The notes: generated from the letters alone by a model not told the origin. A DNA stretch of 64,000 nt from Paragordius varius (GCA_964247055.1 OZ176055.1:7378001-7442000); one strand, 5' to 3'. Counted from the first letter of the stretch, positions 11,164-58,258 are shown. A program made the numbers and translations.

Positions 11164-14100
11164 TCAAAGGGAATCCAAATCTAGCGAAGAGTATTCTTCA
11201 TAAAATGCCTAAGATTAAAAAATATATATATAAATAATCTCAATTTTAATTTAATTTATTATAAATGGATGAAGTTATAATCATATATATTATTATAACA
11301 TTTTATAATTCTTAAAAACGTCTAATTGCTATATTAATATGAAACCAAAGGTCCCAGAGGAATCTGAATTTCCAATAATTATAAAAGACATTGTAATAAC
11401 TAAACTTAGTATCTAATTAAATTATTGAGTTAGATACATTTATCAAAATCATTAAAGAATCGAGGATCAACAATATCTGGTCTAATCAGTCATAAGTTAT
11501 CGGTTTAACAAAGAGAAGATGCCATACAGACGATTAATTTACCACTACACTATTTTGTTCATCTAATATGCAAAGACACACAATTAATTCGCCAAAAGCG
11601 TTTTAATTTCATCATTCAGTAACCGAGGTCTCTACCTGAAAAAAAAATTTACGGCACGCATTGGTTTGCTTATTTGATCAAAAGAAAAATGCTGTTTAAT
11701 GTCATTTGCAAAAACATAGAGTCGGCATGTTTCATAGATTAAAACATGTAAAACGGTTTCGAAAATTATTTGTTATTTGAATGTGAATCGTAAAGCAAAG
11801 TTATTGGATAATGATTAAACTCTAACTCATCGGCAATCGATAAAAGTATTGCTTGTATCACATAACTAAACGTTTAAGAGCAAAGAAAAAATCAATAAAC
11901 TCGATAAATAGTCCCACACAATTAACGTCAAATTAAAAATCGCAAAGGAAACTGCTTAACCGTCAGGAAAGGATATTATTTTTGCGAATTTCAACGGGCG
12001 ATGGGAATTAGCTTTATTTTATAAATACAAACGGTAAAAATCCCTTACTTGCCAGGCCTGGCCATAAACACCAATGCCAGCTATAAGCCCATGCTAAGTG
12101 TTTTGGTTAAAAGAGCGGTATTTTGTACAATGGACTTTTGTCCGGTGAAACCGTGAATACAATGCTTTTGCCAACAATAAATAATTTATGCCAAGCATTA
12201 ATTGAAATACGAGTGGAAATCGGTGAGAAGACATGGCAAAGTCATTTTGCCACATTACAATGTCCCCTCCCACACAGCGGAACTAGTGAGTGACACCTTA
12301 TAATACTGTTTAAAGGAATTTCTTACGCATCCGCCATATTCTCCCGACCTAGCGCTATCTGACTATTACCATATAGCAACAATGGGGAGTAAAGAGCAGG
12401 TCTTCAAAAATTTTATAGATGTTAGAAAATGGGTTGCCAAATGGTATGCCGCAAAAGATAATAGTTTTTCCCGATAAGGCATCATACACTACCTGAGAGA
12501 TGGGCGAAATGTGTAGAAGCCAATCGACAATAATTTAATCATAATAAAATATTTATTTCCAAAACTACTAAAGACTTATGACTACACCTAATATATATCA
12601 ACATCTGATAAAAATGCAATAATTATGCTAAAATAGCAAAAATTGCAATTTTATAAAACATGTTACATACTGATATACATCAAAAATCTATTTTAGCAAA
12701 TTAACCAATTCCTTAACCCATTTTTTCTAGAAATTTATTCAAAGCATATAGAAAATAAATTAAAATTTCTTTTTGGAAAACTTCATCAAAATGCCAAAGA
12801 AACCTGAAATAAATCAATGCCTTGGGTTATGCTTGAAGTAGCAATCATTTCTCGTATGCTATGCATAGATAAAAGGGGTCCTCCCACATCAACTGTCGGC
12901 ACATTTAACAAAGCGGCCAATGTTGGGCCAATAGTGCTTCCAGATCGTAAATCATTACGTGTAACAAAATTCTATTTGATTTTAAACATTGTTTTATTGA
13001 AAAAAATATAAGGTATTTTATTGTGATTGCTAATACTTTGTAAAAATTATTGGTAGATAGTATATACACTAAAGAAAGAAAGAATCATTATTATTAGTTA
13101 AAAGTTAGAAAACGCAAAACGATACGTTCTTTCTTTTATGCACCAATATTAATTCGATATAACTCTTTGTAAATGCATATTTAATTAAATAAATAAATTT
13201 TACTTAAACTGTATTATAAATTGGTTTTTGAATAAAATTTTGTGGAAAAAATTTATTATAGTACATACTTGGAGTGTTATATTCCTTTTGTTAGCAATGT
13301 GCTTAAGAACTGAGGCCGAAATGGCTGATGTCGAATATTTTTGTCCAACGTGATATTTAAGGATAAAACCGCCGTCTAATGTGACCCGATGTGCATAATC
13401 ATGCTTTTCGCTAAAATTTATGTTAATATATTTTAGCAAAATATGATAAAAAAACTAATTTTAATATATACGGATAGTTTGGGTGAAACGCATGGCCCTG
13501 ATCTGCACTGATAAGAAAAGATCTTTCAAGAGCCCGTTCAAAAACATCCCCGTTAAATTTGTGAACTGGCTGAGTTGCATTACTTTTTTCAGAGATTGCT
13601 GTTTTTGTCGATTGAAGATTGCTTTGAAAAATTGGATTTTCAGCGATTCGACGTAACGTGGATCGTATAAAATTTGAAGCCGCCCCTTGAGAAGATTTGG
13701 AACCAACCTGGAGTTGCGTGTTTAAATAGGGCAAAAAAGGGATAAATATTTTAAGACAGGTATTAACAATCCATTAAGATTTGCATATTTTGGTTATAAA
13801 TTTTATATATTTTTACCAACAAAATATATACTTAGGAAGTAACAATATTTCATTTTTGCAATTATAAAACACTTAGTCATAATGTTGTTAATAAATTAAT
13901 AGAAAAATAACTACAAATCTATTGAAAAAATATATATATATAAACTTCTTCGTTATCAAACATGGCTAAGACACGGACATATTTTTCATTTTGAATGGAT
14001 GCATCATTGGTAGACAAAAGTCCCTAAATTAATATCAAATTATATGGAAATATAATTTCTACTCATTTAATTTAAAAATTCGGATAGTTATGACTAAGTT

Positions 14101-56000: not shown

Positions 56001-58258
56001 ATTTTGAGGATATAGGGCAACATCTAAATGAAAGTTTTTAATAAAAAAGAAAACCTATAATTTTGCAAAAATTTGTAATGGTAGTAATTGTTATATATTG
56101 ATTCAATTATTGCTATTTAACAAATTTTATGGATTTACTGAAAACTCTAGATATTATAACTTAAATATAAGTGAAAATTTTTCAAAAATTATAAATTTCT
56201 TTACAGTTGACCAAGATTACTAGTATGTATTAAAAATTTATGTTTTCAATATTTAATTATTTGTCAATTTACGTATTTCCAATTAATGAAAAGATTGTTG
56301 GTTTTTAGAACAATCGTATTTTTTGATTTTAAATATTTTTTATATAAACATTATGATTAATGATATGACACATGTTGAATATTTTAAGATTAAAATATGG
56401 TTGTCTATTTAAAGGTAGAAGTCTTTGGATTTTTATGCCATTTTGTCTTATCTTTGTTGTTTTTGTATTTACGTACCATATATTAATCATTATTTAATTT
56501 AAATTAATTATCAGAAAAAAATATTTTAGTATCGTTATTAATACATAAATGATTTATTTTATATATTTTAAAAAACCTTTAGATGTGTCTTCAAATGAAA
56601 CCAAAAGTGATAGAAATGAAAAGAACCAAGAAAAACAAAATCACATAACTTCAAATCAAGAAAGCCAACACAAAAATAATTTAAGTGATATGAAAAATAA
56701 GAAATCTACTAATGTAGCTCGCAACCAGTCCATTGATCTTTTGAGTCAAGATGAGGTTTTTTCAAAATTTTTATTGCTGTTTTGCTTTAGTTCCAATTAA
56801 ACGATTAAATTATAATTTTAATTTAACCCCTGAACAATTCAAATTCACCTTAAAAATAAATTATGTGTTTTCGAACTAATATCCCTCATTATTAATATGA
56901 AATATATCTTTAAAGGCATAGTTTATTGTTTTTTCAGTATTATTTTAATTTAAAACAAAGATTTTTAAAAATATATTAAAATATAGGTAATTTTAATCTT
57001 AAAAAACATCTATTTGTGGGTGAATTTAAATTGTAAATGCTATATATATATATATATATGGGTTTGATTATTTGGTCAAAAATATATTTTTTTAATTTTT
57101 TGTTAAAGTTTTCATTTGACATACTTGGTTTTGAGACATAAATTTATATACAGTATAGAAATATATATATATATATATATATATATATTATAATATGATT
57201 CTTGTTGATATAGCCAAATACCATACCATGTGCAGCAAAGAGCATTATAATTGGCTAATAGCAAGAAAAAGCGAAAATAATAACTTAAGTCAATAATATT
57301 GCTCTTTGCTGTATATGCTATCTGGCCATATTTATTCAAGAACTAAAAATGTATTATTACCCATACTCTAACTTTTATATATCTTTATATCAGCAACCAC
57401 TTGACAATATTACCGATGATTTTGAAGAATGGGAGGTAAAATTATTTTTTCGATATAATATTTTTTAGTGCTTAAAACCGAAATTTAAATTTCATTTTTG
57501 GTCAATAAAATAAAATACGACGTTTGTATCTAAAACCTCAGGTTTTTACGAGTTTTTAAAACCTACCTACCTTTACGATTTTCACGTCCTATTTTATCTA
57601 CTATTTTTTCTACAATATTTACCACATTTCTTTATTTGAAGGATTTTAATCAAACCAAAACGAATTTAAACAACACCAGCGCTTCAAAGAATGCACAACA
57701 ATTTTCACTTAAACCAGCTAAAAGTGATTTTGAAAAGCGTGTTTTAACGTCCCTTTTTGACGAAGATGTTTCCTACAATAAATCAGCGATAAAATCAACC
57801 AACAAAAATTCTGCACCACATACAAATATAATTAATAATAAAACTGATGATAATTTTAGTGATTGGAATAATACGAATAAATTGAGCGTAGGGAGTGATT
57901 TTGATGGTTGGTCTACAGCTTTATCAAATGAAAAAACTGGCCCTACTACGCTAAGGCAAGCTAATAAAACTGAAACTAAGAAAGGTGCAATTTTAACTAC
58001 TTCAAATAAGTCACTCCATAATACAAATAGTCTGTTGGATGATATTTTAATGGAGGAAACTAAAGCTATGGTAAATTGTAAGACATTATTTTGATTAAAA
58101 TCTCGGTTCAATCATTTTTATTAGAATCATCAAATTTAAAATATATTAAAATACGCATTCCATGGTTTATTTAGTAAATTTAATATTAAGAAATTTTACC
58201 AATTAGTTTATTTTTGTTTTACGTTCTCGGTTATTTCCAGAAGGTTGGAAATGTTTAA
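50094..58258 (+). CDS. SCYL1: SCY1-like pseudokinase with HEAT repeats (N-terminal kinase-like protein), about 15 exons, about 870 aa
   Basis: Exons: 50094-50351, 50378-50748, 50853-50943, 51177-51338, 51935-52096, 52498-52722, 53116-53271, 53741-53864, 54190-54254, 54615-54690, 55711-55980, 56583-56755, 57394-57435, 57642-58070, and a putative last exon 58241-58258. Motifs: [75 protein letters not shown]. The C-terminal exons are less certain. Confidence 0.9.
50352..50377 (+). other. 26-nt micro-intron (SCYL1 intron 1)
   Basis: GTTAATTTTTATGATATAATTTTCAG; removal gives LDGVE|TDSHIYIIT in frame with the downstream kinase-like ORF. Confidence 0.88.
53599..53657. repeat. (TA)n microsatellite, longest in the window
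   Basis: About 29 TA units in a SCYL1 intron. Confidence 0.95.
54296..54560. mobile_element. TACCATTT-terminal MITE abutting a (TA)n tract
   Basis: (TA)n|TACCATTTACAAATCAAATTCACC ... GGGTGAATTTGAACTGTAAATGGTA. Confidence 0.75.
54717..55008 (+). mobile_element. hAT-like MITE family B in a SCYL1 intron
   Basis: CAGGATGTCGTCCAACAC ... GTGTTGGACATCCCCTG; flanks TTATAAAT / TTACAAAG (6/8). Confidence 0.75.
56825..57042. mobile_element. TACCATTT-terminal MITE, 5'-truncated, abutting (TA)n
   Basis: CCCTGAACAATTCAAATTCACC ... GGGTGAATTTAAATTGTAAATGCTA|(TA)n. Confidence 0.6.

Follow-up and report, generated by a model that had tools for sequence, protein, structure and literature searches.

Micro-introns at the 5' ends of genes

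We analysed 64,000 nucleotides (nt) of the genome of the hairworm Paragordius varius (Nematomorpha; GCA_964247055.1 OZ176055.1:7378001-7442000), hereafter the window. Five genes lie in it, namely DNPEP, SLC45, RDH-like, ATP6V1A and SCYL1-like (Table 1), and three of them combine introns of 21-38 nt near the start codon, here termed micro-introns, with much longer introns downstream. The G+C content is 24-34% throughout, and the sequence contains no N.

An earlier sequence-only reading of this DNA had claimed five such short introns, almost pure A/T and within about 540 nt of the start codon, with all remaining introns between 61 nt and about 1.9 kilobases (kb). The features of Table 1 bear this out. 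All five short introns were found, each with GT...AG ends; their G+C fraction is 0.10-0.18, as compared with 0.37 in the DNPEP exons, and all of them end at most 534 nt from the ATG. The distances from the donor to the ATG are 112, 339 and 506 nt for DNPEP introns 1-3, 79 nt for the ATP6V1A intron and 258 nt for the SCYL1 intron. Among the 45 introns mapped in the five genes, five fall at 21-38 nt (four of these, at 21, 26, 28 and 29 nt, being shorter than 30 nt), none at 39-60 nt, and the other 40 at 61-1862 nt, with a median for the window of about 400 nt. The observation that canonical introns of 21-38 nt at gene 5' ends stand beside kb-scale introns is thereby confirmed.

Table 1 Features of the window, with positions counted from its first nucleotide (CDS, coding sequence)
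Feature	Position	Strand	Description
DNPEP (aspartyl aminopeptidase, M18) CDS	11164-17727	-	10 introns: 21, 38, 29, 122, 1862, 837, 238, 61, 297, 1595 nt
DNPEP intron 1	17595-17615	-	21 nt, phase 1, GTAAAA...TTTTAG; multiple of three, no in-frame stop
DNPEP intron 2	17351-17388	-	38 nt, phase 0
DNPEP intron 3	17193-17221	-	29 nt, phase 0
DNPEP intron 5	14939-16800	-	1862 nt, longest mapped; Gordionus counterpart 2216 nt
DNPEP intron 10	11209-12803	-	1595 nt, long intron holding a transposon remnant
mariner (Mos1-like) transposase remnant	12304-12474	+	Inside DNPEP intron 10, antisense to the host gene
SLC45-type sugar transporter (control gene)	25547-30013	+	Reliable introns ~1.2-1.3 kb, 259, 235 nt
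RDH-like short-chain dehydrogenase (control gene)	about 37223-41290	+	Introns ~262, ~540, 568, 407, 910 nt
ATP6V1A (V-ATPase catalytic subunit A) CDS	42005-49917	-	14 introns: 28, 252, 358, 443, 506, 591, 463, 516, 647, 85, 292, 319, 628, 931 nt
ATP6V1A intron 1	49811-49838	-	28 nt, phase 1
Spacer between the divergent ATGs of ATP6V1A and SCYL1	49918-50093		176 nt; start codons at 49917 (-) and 50094 (+)
SCYL1-like pseudokinase CDS	50094-58094	+	~13 introns: 26, ~104, 233, 596, 401, 393, 469, 352, 360, ~1000, ~600-800, 638, 206 nt
SCYL1 intron 1	50352-50377	+	26 nt, phase 0; alternative donor at 50346 gives 32 nt

Spliced alignments and reading frames

We used a purpose-written splice-aware protein-to-genome aligner, which allows GT-AG introns in all three phases and has an adjustable minimum intron length. 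The queries for DNPEP, reported as five homologues, came from Gordionus (two proteins), Logan (one protein), Amphiura, Nematostella and Lottia. With the minimum set to 15 nt, all five homologues returned the same DNPEP introns, including micro-introns 1-3, and the Pfam Peptidase_M18 coordinates ran continuously across these three introns (1-80, 84-120 and 123-164). When the minimum was raised to 45 nt, the DNPEP score was 868 instead of 1039, and the alignment lost conserved blocks, among them AVNSS..LLE.

In ATP6V1A, exon 1 corresponds to residues 5-27 of the mammalian V1-A subunit and exon 2 begins at residue 29, residue 28 being the codon that is split by the 28-nt intron. Two archaeal AtpA scaffolds picked the same 28-nt intron together with 12-13 further introns of 85-647 nt; intron 6 (591 nt) was corrected and the last intron (931 nt) was added by hand. 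Forbidding introns shorter than 45 nt removed the 28-nt intron along with the exon that carries the start codon. Neither the spliced nor the unspliced form of the ATP6V1A junction was matched when metagenome contigs were scanned for the exact pattern.

In the SCYL1-like gene, where the exon boundaries of the 3' half are approximate and the introns other than the micro-intron measure about 104-1030 nt, the only overlap of the two reading frames is at 50366-50396, and a frame-changing intron is therefore needed. The best-scoring GT-AG pair gives an intron of 26 nt, and a 32-nt alternative at 50346-50377 is possible. The family assignment comes from weak collinear matches to yeast Cex1 (E = 0.85 and 0.034) and from matches to the kinase N-lobe, and this weak similarity falls on both sides of intron 1. 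The human SCYL1 protein presumably agrees with the assignment. A word-indexed homologue search with the exon-1 frame of SCYL1 returned no match, and Pfam gave no useful coordinates for exons 1-2.

The sequence-only reading had further held that the four micro-introns whose length is not a multiple of three must be spliced, and this holds: the reading frame is kept only when they are removed, and their retention leads, by direct reading of the sequence, to a premature stop. Outside the micro-introns, the frames of the three genes that carry them are intact across 11-15 exons.

Several further candidates were rejected. In SLC45, an aligner 'intron' of 39-54 nt (about 27053-27106) was discarded, as the frame reads through a divergent loop and the Gordionus proteins align there. 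Likewise, an 'intron' of 54 or 87 nt in DNPEP exon 8 (13566/13599-13652, minus strand) was discarded as in-frame and stop-free. Read through, 13566-13652 aligns to the Gordionus protein P0121 (LRRIAENP versus LRRLATSP), and neither Gordionus nor Lottia has an intron at this site, while in Nematostella a phase-1 intron lies within a few residues of it; this stretch with GT..AG ends is probably coding and could be a retained relic. An ab initio finder for GT..AG pairs that join two open frames gave about 45 hits in the window, most of them non-genic, which means that an intron cannot be claimed on frame logic alone.

Conserved intron positions in DNPEP

Gordionus is the nearest public relative of P. 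varius; the G+C content is about 27% in both genomes, and the proteins encoded in the window are 47-72% identical to those of Gordionus, while the database contains none that is fully identical. DNPEP is closest to two Gordionus paralogues, with 47-51% identity as compared with 41-44% for other phyla, and among 150 DNPEP cluster representatives no hairworm sequence was found besides Gordionus. For the paralogue P0271, at OX940787.2:25419280-25444876 (locus L081), our aligner reproduced the annotated protein at 477 of 477 residues.

Each of the ten DNPEP introns of the window matches one of the ten introns of P0271 in residue and phase, and Lottia gigantea and Nematostella vectensis have introns at these ten positions as well. 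The lengths at these positions vary widely. Intron 1 measures 21 nt in the window, 41 nt in Gordionus, 430 nt in Lottia and 473 nt in Nematostella; the corresponding values are 38, 41, 331 and 168 nt for intron 2, and 29, 44, 284 and 513 nt for intron 3. Between the two hairworms, the lengths are 122 versus 43 nt (intron 4), 837 versus 46 nt (intron 6), 238 versus 923 nt (intron 7) and 1595 versus 323 nt (intron 10), the window being given first. Five of the Gordionus introns measure 41-46 nt and the others 156-2216 nt, with nothing between, and the 46-nt intron 6 lies about 3.2 kb past the ATG, behind an intron of 2.2 kb.

Since the positions and phases are common to Gordionus, Lottia and Nematostella, the DNPEP micro-introns are ancient metazoan introns that shrank. 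The same ancestral positions change size class between species, indicating that a given position does not dictate the size class. The ancient DNPEP micro-introns thus appear to have been reduced to a length that leaves hardly more room than the splice signals need.

These data bear on the possibility that the short segments are not introns but assembly insertions, indel errors or marks of a decaying pseudogene. Indel errors do occur in long-read assemblies of AT-rich genomes. However, the segments measure 21-38 nt and all have GT..AG ends with the extended consensus of the other introns, the frames are otherwise intact in all three genes, and the three DNPEP segments coincide with positions and phases that cnidarians, molluscs and Gordionus have in common. 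For DNPEP, the ancient shared positions therefore exclude assembly error and pseudogene decay; for the five segments as a whole, we regard such an artefact as very improbable.

A separate question concerns the 21-nt DNPEP intron 1, which might be retained, partly or wholly, as coding sequence that adds GKNKLIL to the protein, in a form that nonsense-mediated decay could not police. An open reading frame at 17362-17733 runs straight through the element, in frame and without a stop, and the read-through can be aligned by Pfam at the cost of a small insertion. Nevertheless, removal of the element yields the conserved PWH-AV motif without a gap, its position and phase match introns in Gordionus, Lottia and Nematostella, and the 21 nt have a G+C content of 10% and the full splice consensus. 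We therefore consider retention unlikely.

The surroundings of the Gordionus gene offer further short candidates. The DNPEP paralogue (4256-21269 in the locus) lies inside a large intron of a Thg1-Muted fusion model on the opposite strand, and candidate introns of 43 nt (9324-9366, minus strand) and 48 nt (21562-21609, minus strand) are present in the neighbouring Muted and GCN5L1 genes. Both fit a Gordionus short class of 41-48 nt.

Splice signals of micro-introns and long introns

The consensus of the window introns is GGTAAAT at the 5' site, with the boundary after the first G, and TTTTAG or TTTCAG at the 3' site, as derived from 24-32 introns. The 5' ends of the five micro-introns are GTAAAA, GTAAAT, GTATAA, GTTTGC and GTTAAT. 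When scored with a splice matrix built from introns of at least 60 nt only, the micro-introns reached 8.6-15 bits when both training sets are counted; the first set gave 10.9-14.1 bits for them, and for the long introns a mean of 14.2 with values from 5.4 to 20. The extended splice consensus is common to micro-introns and long introns. Inspection by eye shows A's in every micro-intron at 7-11 nt before the AG, with a short run of T's behind them, an arrangement that many of the long introns have too.

Tests for a U12-type origin were negative, as neither an (A/G)TATCCTT 5' site nor a TCCTTAAC branch site occurs in the five micro-introns. The U2 type agrees with the GT/AG ends, the common consensus, the frame that is restored by removal and, for DNPEP, the shared positions. 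Taken together, the alignments, frames and signals support the interpretation of the five elements as genuine GT-AG introns.

Long introns, repeats and neighbouring genes

The description of the kb-scale introns as filled with transposon remains also held, as a mariner remnant and dispersed repeats were found in the long introns. The remnant in DNPEP intron 10 matches residues 149-201, in the C-terminal domain, of the Mos1 transposase (phmmer against PDB, E = 2.7e-10). Dispersed repeats lie in long introns at 43454-43711, 44911-45176, 54290-54568, 54743-54997 and 56823-57025, with copies in introns of ATP6V1A, SCYL1 and SLC45, and 17% of the window has another copy elsewhere within it. The genome of Gordionus montsenyensis has 26.93% G+C and 63.8% repeats, mainly DNA transposons (bioRxiv 10.1101/2023.06.26.546503), and these figures agree with the window. 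Micro-introns and kb-scale introns coexist, and one genome must therefore splice both size classes.

Other repeats were noted along the window. Further dispersed copies, apparently non-coding, lie at 18071-19162, 33736-35090 and 35634-36690, in families of 2-4 copies each, and the dispersed repeats span intergenic DNA and long introns. (TA)n or TATATA microsatellites recur in several introns. Between DNPEP and SLC45, an 81-nt unit stands in two tandem intergenic copies with 97% identity (23880-24041). Downstream of SCYL1, at 58626-63098, there are six arrays of a 21-nt tandem repeat with a unit of about TTTCCCAGTCAATCGAAACGT, each of 9-12 copies with 88-95% matches and in alternating orientation; they sit within a larger repeated block (59230-63114) with up to 23 self-matches.

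The two control genes gave no micro-introns. The mapped introns of the RDH-like gene, whose start codon at 37223 we infer, include none, and SLC45, with a first exon of about 1.8 kb, has no convincing one. This SLC45 exon is the longest open reading frame in the window (25547-27478, 644 codons) and unusually long for a first coding exon; it encodes a long, low-complexity cytoplasmic loop that is shared with Gordionus alone. The best database match of SLC45 is a protein of Gordionus sp. m RMFG-2023 (E = 2e-119), with 72% identity over the lineage-specific N-terminus from residue 1. The Gordionus SLC45 model P0001 (591 amino acids) apparently lacks the last two exons, which lie here at 29381-29554 and 29790-30013. 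Rfam and tRNA scans of the window found no small nuclear RNA or other RNA gene.

ATP6V1A and SCYL1 stand head to head, and their spacer probably serves as a shared bidirectional promoter. In both genes the first intron is a micro-intron, so that one lies on either side of the spacer.

A proposed explanation and its alternatives

We propose that the micro-introns are U2-type introns, ancient and shrunk to near the minimum, which are removed through the same signals and by the same spliceosome as the kb-scale introns, the latter having been inflated by insertions. We hold this to be likely. The signals would be compact, with a 5' site of 6-7 nt and a 3' module of about 10 nt composed of A's, a short T-rich run and AG; an intron of 21 nt would then hold hardly anything besides the two modules in direct succession, and may be close to the smallest possible. 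Introns would drift towards this functional minimum unless the insertion of a transposon or repeat inflates them, and the length of an intron, once inflated, would be weakly constrained. The clustering at 5' ends would most likely reflect the tolerance of insertions combined with the inheritance of DNPEP introns that were already short at the 5' end, and a separate splicing pathway for the 5' micro-introns would not be needed. The clustering in itself, which is real in this small sample, is equally consistent with insertion tolerance, with an inherited short 5' block or with a positional aid to splicing.

Several points weigh against this explanation. The data consist of 45 introns from one 64-kb window, and three of the five micro-introns lie in one gene and are thus non-independent; the shrink-or-inflate model and the account of the 5' clustering draw on this same sample. 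The conservation of positions was compared for DNPEP, one gene of the three. The SCYL1 junction, for which the evidence is frame logic and weak similarity, is the weakest of the five. The A's 7-11 nt upstream of the AG are candidate branch points, identified by eye in five sequences. Moreover, 13 GT..AG pairs of 18-40 nt inside exons and 88 inside introns equal or exceed the weakest real micro-intron in score, and further information must therefore guide the spliceosome. The signals are ordinary by this count, but it leaves unexplained how real micro-introns are told from decoys.

The size of the sample also leaves room for a different interpretation, in which the 5' bias and the size gap are sampling effects of a single window and the genome-wide distribution is broad with a low minimum. 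Besides the modest number of introns and the presence of three of the five micro-introns in a single gene, the gap is partly bridged by introns of 61, 85, ~104 and 122 nt, and the short 5' introns of DNPEP may be inherited as a block, Gordionus having the same pattern. On the other hand, no intron among the 45 falls at 39-60 nt, the five short introns of Gordionus form a tight class that is followed by nothing up to 156 nt, and an analogous ordinal bias is genome-wide in Gyrodactylus (PMC4040987). We consider a pure sampling effect rather doubtful, while giving it some weight.

The cap-binding complex stimulates the splicing of cap-proximal introns. A dedicated 5'-proximal route, through this complex or the promoter, might thus relax the minimum length and confine micro-introns to the 5' end. 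The sequence-only reading had raised such a cap- or promoter-coupled route. In its favour, besides the known effect of the complex, all five micro-introns occupy ordinal positions 1-3 within 534 nt of the ATG, which has a chance of 0.0025 for five of 45 introns placed at random; two of them flank the 176-nt divergent promoter region; and the decoys are so many that extra positional information could be used. However, DNPEP introns 2 and 3 do not lie close to the cap, a 5' micro-intron is missing from two genes of the five (SLC45 and RDH-like), and the splice signals are the same in micro-introns and long introns, the former scoring within the matrix range of the latter, so that the sequence lends the route no support. 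The comparison with Gordionus weakens it further, both by the 46-nt intron at position 6, some 3.2 kb from the ATG and behind a 2.2-kb intron, and by the orthologous positions that differ in size class between species (122 versus 43 nt and 837 versus 46 nt). A dedicated route of this kind seems to us improbable. We give as little credence to the strongest version of the idea, namely a genome-wide class of sub-30-nt introns, of third independent origin in animals and first in Ecdysozoa, that, in contrast to the myxobolids and dicyemids, is limited to promoter-proximal sites of genes otherwise rich in long introns and transposons, where cap- or transcription-coupled assembly of the spliceosome would permit lengths under the usual minimum.

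Implications

The window suggests that hairworms join the lineages with introns below 30 base pairs (bp), of which they would be the first ecdysozoans. In length, the micro-introns approach the lower end of what is on record for animal introns. The hairworm genome is repeat-rich and not compact, and the miniaturisation of introns would then not need genome compaction. In addition, one conserved position, with 473 nt in Nematostella, 41 nt in Gordionus and 21 nt here, provides a natural gradient for studying the lower limit of splicing.

There may also be a practical consequence. Many aligners and gene predictors refuse introns of this length, and here these lie a few hundred bases at most from the start of conserved genes. 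Hairworm gene models might be truncated or missed as a result, which could worsen the low BUSCO scores of hairworms and inflate claims of gene loss. The BUSCO score of Gordionus is 71.6% (bioRxiv 10.1101/2023.06.26.546503).

Comparison with known systems

The sequence-only reading had put the architecture forward as a candidate for an undescribed system. This does not stand, as the same pattern has been published for flatworms (PMC4040987) and animal introns below 30 bp for myxobolids and Dicyema (PMC13644364). For hairworms themselves, full-text literature searches found no report on intron architecture; the genome paper on Gordionus montsenyensis (bioRxiv 10.1101/2023.06.26.546503) contains no intron analysis, and a second hairworm genome paper likewise contains none.

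Within the phylum, the DNPEP paralogue of Gordionus montsenyensis resembles the window in its ten positions and phases, in its AT-rich consensus and in the combination of a 5' short class with introns of 0.9-2.2 kb. Its short class, at 41-46 nt with one member at position 6, differs from the 21-38 nt of the window.

In nematodes, the sister phylum, short introns have a mode of about 45-50 nt and UUUUCAG at the 3' splice site. The hairworm 3' consensus, TTTTAG or TTTCAG, is like that of nematodes in standing directly at the splice site without a long pyrimidine tract. To our knowledge, introns below 30 nt are not a recognised class in nematodes.

Short introns that depend on SPF45/RBM17 have been studied in humans, where the model intron measures 56 nt (Fukumura et al. 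2021, PMC8363638), about twice the length of the hairworm micro-introns.

Introns below 30 bp were thought to be absent from animals until the work of Hadjez et al. 2026 (PMC13644364), in which, among 51 animal genomes, they were found only in myxobolid myxozoans and Dicyema japonicum. That paper predicts further lineages with such introns, and its main text makes no mention of hairworms. The hairworm resembles myxobolids and Dicyema in being a parasitic animal with canonical introns below 30 bp at conserved positions between conserved exons, in the A's a few bases before the AG, and in a polypyrimidine tract that is missing or very short. The differences lie in the setting. The median intron of myxobolids and dicyemids is 22-27 bp and their genomes are compact, whereas the median in the window is about 400 nt and the hairworm genome is repeat-rich. 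The bulk of their introns is tiny, whereas all but five of the 45 window introns measure 61-1862 nt. Their motifs are reduced to GTa and AG, whereas the hairworm introns appear to keep GTAAAT and TTTTAG, as judged from a small sample of 24-32 introns. Judged from five introns in one window, hairworms would be the third animal lineage with introns below 30 nt.

The closest parallel to the architecture as a whole is found in flatworms. Gyrodactylus salaris has intron modes of about 32 and 58 bp beside introns of up to about 20 kb (Hahn et al. 2014, PMC4040987), and the short mode dominates ordinal positions 1-2 throughout the genome (PMC4040987). Tapeworms also have bimodal intron lengths, according to Tsai et al. 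2013 as cited in PMC4040987. As in flatworms, the window combines a discrete short class (21-38 nt), enriched at positions 1-3, with kb-scale introns, and hairworms are parasites too. Four of the five hairworm micro-introns are shorter than the Gyrodactylus mode of about 32 bp, reaching down to 21 nt, and the flatworm pattern is genome-wide, whereas the hairworm is known here from 45 introns. Flatworms belong to the Platyhelminthes, whereas the hairworm is an ecdysozoan; as the phyla differ, any likeness is convergent. From the five micro-introns of this window, hairworms would be the second phylum in which bimodal intron lengths of the flatworm type are combined with a 5' bias.

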